Below are positions 5,994 through 10,685 of a DNA stretch of 64,000 nt, one piece after another; the first letter of the stretch is position 1; every line of letters begins with the position of its first letter. Source of the DNA: Malacoraja senta (Eukaryota). The DNA lies in assembly GCA_038087875.1 (NCBI GenBank), contig CM075994.1, forward strand, positions 8,990,001-9,054,000. Direction: 5' to 3'. A program made the translations under genes and the position numbers. The notes beneath the pieces are model-generated. The model was given only the letters and a program-made list of their open reading frames with translations, searched no databases and was not told the DNA's origin.

Positions 5994-6420
5994 GAGGCTC
6001 ACAGTTAATCTAGTTGCTATTTGCGGTATTCTTACTCCACTGAGTCTGAATTGGGGTCTCGACCCGAAACGTTGCCCATTCCTTTTCTCCATGGATGCTG
6101 CCTCACCCGCTGAGTTACTCCAGCATTTTTTGTCTACCTTCGATTCAAACCAGCAGCTGCAGTTCTTTCTTACGCATCCTTTCTCCTTAACCTCCCTTCC
6201 ATTTCGGTGCATGTGATCTGCGGATTCTACGCATTTCTGACCCAAAGTCCGTGCCAAATTCGTCATGCCGTGGCCTGCTCATGCACGAAGTCTGCGTATG
6301 TTTACAGGAACGGACAGACCGCAATTTGTTCCATTGCGGTTCGCTTGGCTCGATTCTAATTGTGTATGCAAGGATTGTCTCATGCCAAAAATCAACCTTG
6401 CTCTTCTTGTGCAGGTAACG

Positions 6421-6478
6421 ATGACATTCAACAAGCGAACTGTCTATTTGCAGCTGATTTACTATGCATTCTGCATTG
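6421..6478 (+). CDS. Leader exon of an unidentified Ig-like type I membrane protein (MTFNKRTVYLQLIYYAFCI)
   Basis: Acceptor ctcttcttgtgcAG ends at 6414. ATG has A at -3. Hydrophobic run, then phase-1 donor G|GTGAGT at 6479. Confidence 0.65.
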
Positions 6479-7680
6479 GTGAGTTCCAATATTTTATTTA
6501 CACGTTAATATCACACCATGAAGCGAACAACGGCATCAGGTCTAGAAAGGTTCGACTCAAATGGAGGCTTTGGAAAGGGCGCAGAGATAGTTTACCAGAG
6601 CGCTGCATGATTGTACACTCTGGAGTTTAGAAGGATGAGAGGGTATCTCATTGAAACATATAAGATTGTTACGGGTTTGGACACGCTAGAGGCAGGAAAC
6701 ATGTTTCCGATGTTATAGACAATAGACAATAGGTGCAGGAGGAGGCCATTTGGCCCTTCGAGCCAGCATCGCCATTCAATGTGATCATGGCTGATCATCC
6801 CCAATCAGTACCCCGTTCCTGCCTTCTCCCCATATCCCCTGACTCCGCTATTTTTAAGAGCCCAATCTAGCTCTCTCTTGAAAGCATCCAGAGAACCTGC
6901 CTCCACCGCACTATGAGGCAGAGATGTTGGGGGAGTCCAGAACCAGGGGCCACAGTTTAAGAATAAGGAGTAAGCCATTTAGAGACGACTAAACACTTTT
7001 TCTCACAGAGAGTTGTGAGTCTGTGGAATTCTCTGCCTCAGAGGGCGGTGGAGGCCGGTTCGCTGGATACTTTCAAGAGAGAGCTAGATAGGGCTCTTAA
7101 AAATAGCAGAGTCAGGGGATATGGAGAGAAGGCAGGAACGGGGTACTGATTGGGGATGATCAGCCATGATCACGTTGAATTGCGGTGCTGGCTCGAAGGG
7201 CCGAGGATAGGTGACAATAGACTACCCTTCACACTCGGGGCAATTTACAATTTTACCAAACTCATTGCGTATTGGAGTGCGGGAGGAAACCGGAGCACAC
7301 TTGGGGAAAACACACGCTTGTCACGGGGAGAACGTACAAACTCCGTACAGACAGCGCACCAGGTCAGGATCGAACCCGGGTTTCGGGCTCTGTGCGGCCA
7401 CAACTCTACCGCTCCGCGCAATATATAAAACCATAAGAGGCATATATTGTGTCTACTGTTTATCAATCAATCCGCCAATTAATTAATCATTCACTCAATC
7501 AGTATACTTTAGCTGTAAAGAATTGGCGAGTTTATATACTTAGGGAACATAATTATCCGTTGAGTTTGTGGTTTGGACCAGATGGATCTGCTTTGACCAA
7601 TTATACGTTATAGCTGAAGATAGATACAAAAAGTTGGAGTAACTCAGAGGGACAGGCAGCATCTGTGGAAAGAAGGAATG

Positions 7681-7713
7681 GGTGACGTTTCGGGTCGAGA
7701 CCCTTCTTCAGAC
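7681..7713 (-). ncRNA. Minimal type I hammerhead-like motif in a Penelope-derived repeat
   Basis: Reverse complement reads AGT CTGAAGA A GGGT CTCG ACCC GAAA C GTC ACC. Confidence 0.5.
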
Positions 7714-8271
7714 TGGTTAGGGATAAGGGAAACGAGAGATTTATGCGATGATGTGGAGAGATAAAGAACAATGAATGAAAGATGTGCAAAAAAGTAACGA
7801 TGATACAGGAAACAGGCCATTGTTAGCTGTTTGTTGGTTGAAAAAGAGAAGGTAGGGCAACTTGGGTGGGAGAGGGATAGAGAGAGAGAAAGGGAATACC
7901 GGGGTTACTTGAAGTTAGAGAAATCAATATTCATGCCACTGGGCTGCAAGCTGCCCAAGCGAAAGGAAAGAGATGGCACAGTTTAAGAATAAGGGGTAAG
8001 CCATTTAGAACGGAGACGAGGAAACATTTTTTCTCACAGAGAGTTGTGAGTGTGGAATTCTCTGCCTTGGAGGGCAGTGGAGGCCGGTTCTCTGGATACT
8101 TTCAATAGAGAGCTAGATAGGGCTCTTAAAGATAGCGGAGTCAGGGGATATGAGGAGAAGGCAGGAATGGGGTACCGATTGGGGATGATCAGCCATGATC
8201 ACATTGAATGGCGGTGTTGGCTCGAAGGGCCGAAGGGCCTACTCCTGCACCTATTGTCTATTGTCTATTGC

Positions 8272-8412
8272 CTTCTTCTTCTTGCATATGGCGTGCACAG
8301 CCTAAGGTTGTAGGACAACTTGTTCTATTTGATCTTATTTGATTGTGCACGCCAGGTTGATTGCATTGGTCGAAACAGGACGGACCACGTGAAGGTTGCA
8401 ATCTCCCACCCC
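8272..8412 (-). mobile_element. Short SINE-like retroelement with a 5' HDV-like ribozyme (8412-8359) and (GAA)n tail, copy 1
   Basis: Near-identical to 45761-45901. Sense strand GGGGTGG GA GATTGCA ACC TTCACGT GGT CCGTCCT GT TTCGA CCAA TGCAATC. Confidence 0.7.
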
Positions 8413-8465
8413 AGAGATGGCCTACAATGTCAGCATTCAATTCTATCCTTTTATCCTCACTCCAG

Positions 8466-8684
8466 AGAGCCGGTCGATTTGCACAACAGGTGAAGATCTT
8501 CTGTTGACAATAACATCGAGCGGCCAGACTGGCAACAATCTGGAGATGACCCTCCATAAAGCAAGTCAGAAGGCCGATGTGGAAGAAATCTTTGAATCGC
8601 TGCAGGAAGACGGATGTAATTATTTGTGCTCTTTAACTGGAAAGAGTCAAGCGTCCAGCAAAAAGAAAGAATTAGTAGTGAAAT
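8466..8684 (+). CDS. Exon 2 of the unidentified membrane protein: 73-codon atypical Ig-like domain
   Basis: Polypyrimidine acceptor (AG 8464-8465) and perfect donor GTAAGT at 8685. The 219-nt phase 1-1 exon is open throughout: SRSICTTGEDLLLTITSSGQTGNNLEMTLHK...EDGCNYLCSLTG...KELVVK. Confidence 0.65.
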
Positions 8685-9684
8685 GTAAGTAGTTCTTGAG
8701 AATAGTGAGCATACTGCAGGCGCATGCATTGTGGTCGATTTGCAATTCCTGTTATTTAATATCATGTTCATTTAACGAGAGGGGCAAAGTTTAAAGAAGA
8801 TTTTAAAGAAGTTGTTTTTAACGCAGAGAAAGGTGGGAATCTTGAACGCACTTCCGGCGGAAGTGGGGAGGCAGATACTATCGTGGCATTTAAGAGGCTT
8901 TTAGATCAGCAGGGAATAGGGTGGGAGAATAGGACCAGAGATTTAAGTTGATGGGGAAAAGATTTAACAGGAATCTGAGGGGTAACACAAAGAATTGAGG
9001 TGTTGGCTCGAAGGGCCGAATGGCCTGCCCCTACGTCTATTGTCTATTGCCTAGGGTGGAGGGTGTATGGAACAAGCTGCCAGCGGACGTAGTTTAAGAA
9101 ACAATTAGACAGGCTTGGAGGGATATGGACCAAAAGCGGGCAGGTGGGAATAGTAGCTGGGACATGTTGGCCGATGTGGGCAAGTTGGGCCGAAGGGCCT
9201 GTTACCACGCTGTATCACTCTATGACTCTGAGGATTTAGTGTTGGGGTTAGGTTAACTTAGCATCATGTTCGGCACGGATGTTTCGTGTAGTTTAGAGGT
9301 ACAGCGCGGAAACAGAGCCTTCGGCCCACCGAGTCCGCGCCGACAACGCTATCCTAATCGCACGAGGGACAATTTTGAATTAAACCAAGCCTACAAACCT
9401 GTAAGTCTTTGGAGTGTGGGGGGGAAACCGGAGATCCTCGCAGGTCACGGGGAGAACGTACGAACTCCCAATAGACAAGCGCCCGTAGCCAGGATCGAAC
9501 CCGGCTCTCTGGCGCTGTGAGGCAGGAACTCTATCGCTGTGCCACCGTGTCGCCAAACGCTGTGGGCCCTAGGATATGTTCCTGTGTTGTCCTATTCTAT
9601 GTTCTATGTGATTGCGGGAGTAGGTAAAAAGAACAGCAGGAGGTTTTGGGGGAATTCCATCCAAAACAGTTTCTGAGGATTGTA

Positions 9685-10500
9685 GACAATAGGTGCAGGA
9701 GTAGGCCATTCACCCCTTCGAGCCAGCACCGCCATTCAATGTGATCATGACTGATCATCCCCAATCAGTACCCCGTTCCTGCCTTCTCCCCATATCCCCT
9801 GACTCCGCTATCTTTAAGAGCCCTATCTTGCTCTCCCTTGTAAGTATCCAGAGAACCGGCAGAGAATTCCACAGACTCGCAACTCTCTGTGCGAAAAAGT
9901 ATTTCCTCATCTCCGTTCTAAATGATTTACCCCTTATTCTTAAACTGTGGCCCCTGGTTCTGGACTCCCCCAACATCGGGAACATGTTTCCTGCCTCTAG
10001 CGTGTCTAAAACCCCTTATAATCTTATATGTTTCAATAAGATACCCTCTCATCCTTCTTAACTCCAGAGTATACAAGCCCAGCCGCTCCATTCTCTCAAC
10101 ATATGACAGTTCCGCAATCCCGGGAATTAACCTTGTAAACCTACGCTGCATCGCCCCAATAGCAAGAGTGTTCTTCCTCAAATTAGGGGAACAAAACTGC
10201 ACACAATACTCCAGGTGCGGTCTCACTAGAGCCCCGTACAGCTGCAGAAGGACCTCTTTGCTCCTAAACGCGACTCCTCTTGTTATAAAGACCATTGGCT
10301 TTCTTCACTGCCTGCTGTACCTGCATGCTTACTTTCATAGACTGATGAACAAGGACCCCCAGATCCCGTTGTACTTCCCCTTCACCCAACTCGCCACCAT
10401 TTAGATAGTAATCCCAGCCGCTCCATTCTCTCAGCACATGACAGTCCCGCCATCCCGGGAATTAACCTGGTGATCCCACGCTGCACTCCCTCAATCACAA
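9685..10500 (-). mobile_element. CR1-clade LINE 3' fragment
   Basis: LYGALVRPHLEYCVQF and QRRFTRLIPG motifs. Confidence 0.85.
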
Positions 10501-10565
10501 GAATAATGGAAAGGTATTTTAAGTGTCATGGTATTGACACTCTGACTCCGTCCTTTGCGATTCAG

Positions 10566-10685
10566 GTTACATGAAGACAGCGACCGATGCATGGACAATC
10601 GTGCCATCATTCTTGATCGGAGTAATGGCGATGACAGCTTTGATGCTCGTATTTCTTACATTTCGAGTGATATGGGAGAAACGCG
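10566..10685 (+). CDS. TM exon of the unidentified membrane protein (CYMKTATDAWTIVPSFLIGVMAMTALMLVFLTFRVIWEKR)
   Basis: Acceptor ctccgtcctttgcgattcAG at 10564-10565, phase 1 and in frame with exon 2. About 24 uncharged hydrophobic residues followed by basic residues. Donor uncertain (10685 or 10689). Confidence 0.6.

Follow-up and report, generated by a model that had tools for sequence, protein, structure and literature searches.

Does the DNA upstream of an array of NKp30/NCR3-like receptor genes in the skate Malacoraja senta hold a further gene and, if so, is the protein that it would encode built on an immunoglobulin (Ig) domain? The question arises from a window of 64,000 nucleotides (the whole stretch that was analysed; GenBank assembly GCA_038087875.1, contig CM075994.1, positions 8,990,001 to 9,054,000 of the forward strand), in which a first-pass annotation had read three exons between positions 6415 and 10685 as a membrane protein with a miniature, non-canonical Ig-like domain. 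Our preferred answer, held tentatively and at a little short of an even chance, is that the candidate is a lineage-restricted orphan gene, predicted from its sequence to encode a small type I single-pass membrane protein of unknown fold, with an incomplete 3′ end. The intrinsic signals of the locus, namely splice sites, phases, topology and the outcome of simulation, argue for real exons. Their architecture is the ordinary one of receptors of the Ig superfamily (IgSF), and the ectodomain is unrecognisable.

Three exons joined in one frame

The candidate comprises the following exons, numbered, like all positions below, from the first letter of the window.

6415-6478, + strand: exon 1, with the start codon ATG at 6421 (A at -3), 19 codons plus 1 nt, and the donor GTGAGT at 6479
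8466-8684, + strand: exon 2, 219 nt, phase 1 on entry and exit, preceded by a long pyrimidine tract and CAG and followed by GTAAGT
10566-10685, + strand: exon 3, preceded by ...ttcag, encoding a short stalk, a transmembrane (TM) segment and a basic stop-transfer stretch R-x4-KR, with the donor GCG/GTTGGT at 10686

Joined, these exons are in frame and all of phase 1, which confirms the succession of a leader, a domain of about 73 residues and an uncharged TM segment proposed in the first-pass annotation; the four motifs that it had singled out (GEDLLLT, LEMTLHK, DGCNYLC and ELVVK) are likewise all found in exon 2. The spliced product so far amounts to 132 residues, with cysteines at 18, 25, 70, 74 and 93. 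Exon 1 encodes a signal-like leader in which a basic n-region precedes a hydrophobic run (best 10-residue hydropathy, 1.76), and exon 2 encodes an ectodomain of about 73-74 residues carrying the cysteines at product residues 25, 70 and 74. Together with Cys 93, the codon of which is split by the exon 2-3 junction, the mature ectodomain thus holds four cysteines (25, 70, 74 and 93). The TM segment of exon 3 is an uncharged hydrophobic stretch of 23 residues (mean Kyte-Doolittle hydropathy 2.41 over 20 residues), and is followed by a positive-inside flank, in a coherent topology. Within exon 2 the proposed frame alone is open, the other two sense frames carrying 7 and 4 stops; an in-frame open reading frame (ORF) at 8393-8692 closely brackets this exon, and the in-frame ORFs end near the splice sites.

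The upstream end of exon 1 allows for more than one start of the transcript. The CAG of a strong acceptor, preceded by a pyrimidine tract, ends at 6414, which is 6 nt before the ATG at 6421. Exon 1 could therefore be an internal exon that follows an untranslated one. The leader exons of the NKp30-like genes at this locus likewise have an acceptor a few nucleotides before the ATG. A further in-frame ATG, at 6382 (+), would lengthen the product by 13 residues (MPKINLALLVQVT) if transcription started upstream and the acceptor at 6414 were skipped.

The window is rich in repeats. All three exons, together with their splice signals, lie within non-repeat islands (6177-6610, 8274-8941 and 10506-10857) between transposon insertions. 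One repeat fragment resembling a short interspersed nuclear element (SINE) lies close to exon 2.

8366-8412, - strand: antisense SINE-like fragment, 91-94% identical by blastn over 47 nt, with copies at 18424-18470 (+) and 45762-45808 (+)

These three copies represent the start of a short element. The origin of exon 2 as an exonised SINE was considered and rejected: the antisense fragment stops 54 nt short of the acceptor, and exon 2 is therefore not SINE-derived. A scan of the whole window with Rfam at gathering thresholds found zero RNA families.

The strength of the splice sites was scored with a simple position-weight matrix (PWM). The donors of exons 1, 2 and 3 obtained 8.9, 8.95 and 2.8, and the corresponding acceptors 11.6, 8.0 and 7.3; the genuine NKp30-like V exon at 16601-16906, which served as a benchmark, reached 8.5 for its acceptor and 8.3 for its donor. 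Four of the candidate's five splice sites match a true V exon of the same window in score; the donor of exon 3 is weak. The good splice sites claimed for the candidate in the first-pass annotation hold to this extent, for most of the junctions and not for the weak exon 3 donor.

To these scores can be added a scan of the window for the complete architecture, defined as a leader that starts with ATG, has a hydrophobic core and ends at a phase-1 donor, followed by a phase 1-1 open exon of 150-400 nt and a phase-1 TM exon, with introns limited to 0.1-5 kb and site scores of at least 7. The only full triple on the + strand was the candidate itself; besides its exons, the lists of components contained a few transposon ORFs together with the V and TM exons of the true NKp30-like genes. 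Zero triples came from the three control strands (minus, reversed and complement) and from 250 shuffles made with an order-2 Markov model in blocks of 2 kb. In the shuffled sequences the components occurred at rates of 1.27, 0.41 and 0.24 per strand, which correspond to about 0.0008 triples per strand, and hence to roughly 0.001-0.002 expected per window, a figure that somewhat understates the true chance rate since the thresholds were fixed after the candidate had been seen. The three-exon arrangement is clearly unusual for this window, and it is statistically unlikely to have arisen there by chance.

Weighing the candidate against chance

Beyond a single window the argument changes. More than 1000 windows of this genome have been read and, at 0.001-0.002 expected in each, a handful of chance triples is possible genome-wide; moreover, 8% of the 73-codon windows on the + strand are open. 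The candidate may then be a chance constellation, in which unrelated open stretches with splice-like signals came to be aligned in intergenic DNA and yield neither mRNA nor protein. We regard this explanation as a serious one, falling well short of probable, and the observations that weigh against a gene are gathered here.

At the level of the product, the hydrophobic core of the leader is broken by Gln and Tyr, and the 132 residues contain no N-glycosylation sequon. The 3′ end adds further difficulties. The donor of exon 3 is weak (PWM 2.8), no phase-compatible tail exon was found between 10.7 and 16.6 kb, where only ORFs derived from transposable elements occur, and neither AATAAA nor ATTAAA is present between 10.6 and 13 kb; the gene model is consequently incomplete or truncated. 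Downstream of exon 3 lies a reverse-transcriptase fragment of a long interspersed nuclear element (LINE, about 10860-11870), followed by a run of N at 11877-12076. Left unspliced at 10686, the frame would continue for 40 Cys-rich, hydrophobic codons to a stop at 10805-10807, and this read-through tail does not look like coding sequence.

The search for relatives was equally negative. A word-indexed search of 5.8 billion proteins, queried with an ORF of 98 residues of which the exon part was scored, gave no match, and an exhaustive phmmer search of 1.84 billion representative proteins gave no credible homologue. Three phmmer matches were rejected as spurious because they are internally repetitive and owe their score to the sum of 4-6 weak stretches; the Pfam rows of the two that were inspected proved to be noise. 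These libraries also cover the proteome annotated for the skate Rhinoraja longicauda, including the NKp30/NCR3-like products referred to below as P0004 and P0005, so that an annotated orthologue in that species would have surfaced. Products of the V exons of the M. senta genome itself are absent from the libraries, for which reason a missing self-match is uninformative. Within the window, no second copy of the candidate precedes the tandem paralogue at 40 kb or occurs elsewhere, and blastn and tblastn detected no similarity to the V, leader or TM exons of the array.

For comparison with a related genome, 48 kb of R. longicauda around P0004 and P0005 (two regions, L001 and L002) were used. The window is colinear with L001 from 12 to 22 kb, at 76-89% identity, and the three exons and their unique flanks have no counterpart in the 48 kb of L001 and L002; in the 9.4 kb that precede the P0004 leader the matches are short interspersed repeats only. 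A conserved ORF in related species, the lack of which the first-pass annotation had named among the refuting observations, was thus not encountered in this NKp30 region of R. longicauda, and the absence constitutes moderate rather than strong evidence against conservation, given that the orthology of the arrays is uncertain. The clear match to a known gene that it had named as a refutation did not arise in the protein and Pfam searches either.

Recognition by a protein language model (ESM Atlas) and single-sequence structure prediction with AlphaFold point in the same direction. Exon 2 obtained a language-model score of 1830, without a usable match and below the 2064 of the antisense ORF over the same exon, whereas the neighbouring V exon, used as a control, reached 3479 and was assigned to V-set clusters at 0.96. 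The AlphaFold model of exon 2 (pLDDT 51, pTM 0.36) consists of three strands and an 11-residue helix in the order strand-strand-helix-strand, and the V exon modelled under identical settings is all-beta, with a pLDDT of 76 and a pTM of 0.68. The lack of relatives, of a Rhinoraja counterpart, of recognition by language model or structure prediction, and of a 3′ end argues against a conserved, well-folded domain.

Each of these results would also fit the chance constellation: billions of proteins without a homologue, nothing alignable in the Rhinoraja region, two predictors that treat exon 2 like a non-coding ORF, with the antisense control scoring higher, and a gene model for which no 3′ end was found beyond a weak last donor. 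What such a constellation would leave to coincidence is the absence of any triple from the 250 shuffles and the three control strands, the presence of four splice sites scoring at least 7.3 and equal to those of real exons, the single open frame of exon 2, and the mutual consistency of exon order, phase, leader, TM segment and positive-inside flank. With both sides considered, an orphan gene remains our favoured, if tentative, interpretation. The candidate resembles the orphan genes of fast-evolving immune clusters in being short, in having few exons and no detectable homologue, and in lying within a birth-and-death array; its own orphan status, however, is drawn from negative searches only.

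The ectodomain and the Ig fold

The first-pass annotation had gone further than an orphan gene and assigned to exon 2 a truncated Ig fold with B, C, F and G strands and an alternative disulfide, in a functional co-receptor, ligand or inhibitory counterpart of the NKp30-like receptors. Several features lend this idea some appeal. At the motif level exon 2 resembles an Ig domain in the patterns G-x2-L-x-L, D-x3-Y-x-C and E-L-V-V, the ectodomain has an even number of cysteines (four), and the candidate lies inside the array and on the strand that the array uses. A six-strand ABE/CFG sandwich of 72 residues would also be physically conceivable, although no measurement made here favours one. Compared with the V-set (PF07686), as exemplified by T-cell receptor (TCR) V-alpha domains, the candidate shares the D-x3-Y-x-C stretch, the loop and a short beta-like E-L-V-V, but fails with respect to profile, canonical disulfide, tryptophan, length and predicted fold. 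Its 73 residues contrast with the about 95-115 of V-set and I-set domains (PF07686 and PF07679), which form a two-sheet beta sandwich with seven to nine strands, and in the alignment of the first-pass annotation Ile occupies the position of the B-strand cysteine and Met that of the tryptophan, the F-strand cysteine alone being kept. Of the F-strand motif D-x-G/A-x-Y-x-C, Asp at -6, Tyr at -2 and Cys at 0 are present, with Gly at -5 instead of -4, in a stretch that is short and was picked post hoc.

Profile and alignment methods lend the assignment no support. A Pfam-A search (hmmscan, E <= 10) recognised no family in exon 2, and for the TM exon it returned a sub-threshold match to Smim3 alone (E = 0.036); the statement of the first-pass annotation that no family could be named for the ectodomain is thereby borne out by both Pfam and the protein searches. 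Aligned by hhalign with a profile of three local NKp30-like V domains, exon 2 reached a probability of 0.2% over ten columns around Y-x-C. Smith-Waterman comparison with shuffles yielded z = 0.9 for the ectodomain against the V domain of the window and z = 1.6 against P0004, while z was -0.8 for the leader and 1.3 to 3.0 for the TM segment, which is not significant after five tests.

Searches of the Protein Data Bank (PDB) with phmmer led to a comparable result. The top matches, designed pentatricopeptide repeat (PPR) proteins, were rejected as a repeat-summing artefact, and the V-domain matches to TCR V-alpha and nanobodies are not significant (E = 0.47-1.6). The best alignment over a single stretch is with residues 36-96 of a TCR V-alpha (E = 0.47); it spans 62 columns, about 30% of them identical as judged by eye, and closes with ...YLC. 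It places exon 2 on strands C′ to F, in contradiction to the B-C plus F-G assignment of the first-pass annotation. Because the two alignments disagree on the strands, only the D-x3-Y-x-C stretch is common to both; this stretch is also the only part aligned by hhalign and falls within the V alignment from the PDB.

The predictions described above complete this picture. The language model does not recognise exon 2, and the helix of the AlphaFold model falls where an E strand would be expected, although the low confidence of that model limits the reach of the test. A Foldseek search of the PDB with this weak model, the structural check suggested in the first-pass annotation, found nothing at E <= 0.001. 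Finally, no immunoreceptor tyrosine-based inhibitory or activation motif (ITIM or ITAM) and no charged TM residue ties the candidate to receptor signalling. A functional miniature Ig-like domain is accordingly very improbable. No Ig domain can be demonstrated in the ectodomain, the fold of which should be regarded as of unknown type, and the label "miniature Ig domain" is best abandoned until RNA and comparative data become available.

The weak V-like signal could have a different source, namely a decayed and non-functional relic of an old IgSF receptor, in which exon 2 would be a V remnant (either the C′-to-G part or an internally deleted V). The leader and TM exons of such a relic could still be recognised, and insertion of the LINE would have removed its tail. 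The sub-threshold PDB matches to TCR V-alpha and nanobody V domains, the D-x3-Y-x-C stretch, and the missing tail with a LINE directly downstream are all in keeping with such decay, which is moreover common in the array, two examples being the V pseudo-exon at 14073-14407 and the leader that has a 2-nt insertion at about 12.26 kb. Three intact ORFs and four strong splice sites would nevertheless be unexpected after long decay, the similarity to V domains is not significant, and no nucleotide similarity links the candidate to the V, leader or TM exons of the array. A relic is thus an unlikely explanation, if a somewhat less strained one than a working miniature Ig domain.

The NKp30/NCR3-like neighbourhood

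The genes beside which the candidate lies were located in the window as follows.

~12.24 kb and ~40.0 kb, + strand: NKp30-like leaders (MQW...), each abutting a run of N and conserved with Rhinoraja
16601-16906 and 44431-44736, + strand: NKp30-like V exons
18679-18828 and 46126-46302 (18.68 and 46.13 kb), + strand: NKp30-like TM exons with a Lys in the helix

The candidate is a unit of its own, on the same strand and ahead of the first gene of the array in this window. The possibility that exon 1 is the leader of an NKp30-like gene was rejected, the true MQW... leaders being those at ~12.24 and 40.0 kb. With the NKp30/NCR3-like VJ-type receptors, both those of the window and LOC144602683 and LOC144602684 of Rhinoraja, the candidate has in common the strand, the locus and the layout of leader exon, one ectodomain exon and TM exon, all of phase 1. 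The differences are numerous: its ectodomain comprises 73 residues as against about 105, it is devoid of the B-strand cysteine, the tryptophan and the J-like GxGTxVTV, its TM segment contains no Lys of the activating type and it has no ITIM tail as found in the inhibitory P0005, and the similarities of leader, ectodomain and TM segment are all non-significant.

Several further observations concern these neighbours themselves. A third NKp30-like V exon is present at 14073-14407 (+), between the 12.24-kb leader and the 16.6-kb V exon; relative to the intact copies its frame is shifted near 14222 and also broken by an in-frame stop, which makes it a pseudo-exon, and its flanks are 82% identical to the V unit at 44.3-45.2 kb. 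The first NKp30-like leader (12240-12275) has a 2-nt insertion at about 12.26 kb and reads MQWSGGSL..., as compared with MQWSVVAW at 40009-40040 and MQWGVVAW in Rhinoraja P0004 (L001 10001-10045), and it appears from this comparison to be frameshifted. Both NKp30-like TM exons of the window stop after ...SRRK or ...SRRKET, where P0004 continues (...GKEAEQAGQTVR); as the tblastn similarity persists beyond the stop of the window's TM exons, the tail was shortened recently. In R. longicauda, the annotated 180-residue product of LOC144602684 (P0005, L002 10001-18894) begins at the F strand within the V exon and, given a full V exon just upstream (L002 9740-10114, tblastn with P0004), the public model of P0005 looks 5′-truncated. 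The tail of P0005 carries three ITIM-like Y-x-x-L/V motifs.

A pyrimidine tract plus CAG is found 12 nt before the NKp30-like start codon (12228 +; about 9985 in L001). Its conservation in both genes of the window and in Rhinoraja suggests an untranslated upstream exon in those genes. From the acceptor at 12228 the frame is open in phase 1; in a hypothetical transcript in which exon 3 of the candidate were spliced there, the frame would be maintained.

A second small membrane protein with a comparable genomic position is LST1, a small transmembrane adaptor that adjoins NCR3 in the human MHC class III region. The likeness consists in a small single-pass membrane protein encoded beside NCR3; yet LST1 (PF05083) has almost no ectodomain and no signal peptide, whereas the candidate has a leader and an ectodomain of 74 residues, and a Pfam search with the candidate's TM exon gave no LST1 match.

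If the candidate is an orphan gene, as we tentatively prefer, its leader would be cleaved and the ectodomain displayed on the cell surface, where one or two disulfides may hold it together; Cys 25 or the membrane-proximal Cys 93 might form an interchain bond instead. Because the TM segment is uncharged, the protein would presumably be anchored without an adaptor, and if it signals at all, it would do so through a cytoplasmic tail, which is not identifiable here. A role as co-receptor, ligand or inhibitory counterpart beside NKp30 is suggested by position alone; the available sequence contains neither a charged TM residue nor an ITIM, an ITAM or a tail. It is conceivable, at the speculative end of what we consider, that the candidate is an expressed, skate-specific surface protein that arose inside the NKp30/NCR3 array. 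Its new, small, disulfide-bonded ectodomain would be either a new alpha/beta fold or a minimal Ig derivative of six strands, and the protein would act together with the receptors of the array, for instance as their partner in cis or as a decoy ligand.

Should the candidate prove not to be real, it would show how closely chance can mimic an IgSF-style gene, down to three intact phase-1 ORFs and strong splice sites, and that motif-level resemblance to Ig domains is not to be trusted without a profile or fold test. Should it be real, it would represent a young, unannotated surface protein born in one of the oldest natural killer (NK)-receptor clusters of jawed vertebrates, which would offer a useful example of how genes are born in a birth-and-death immune array, as well as a possible partner of the NKp30-like receptors.

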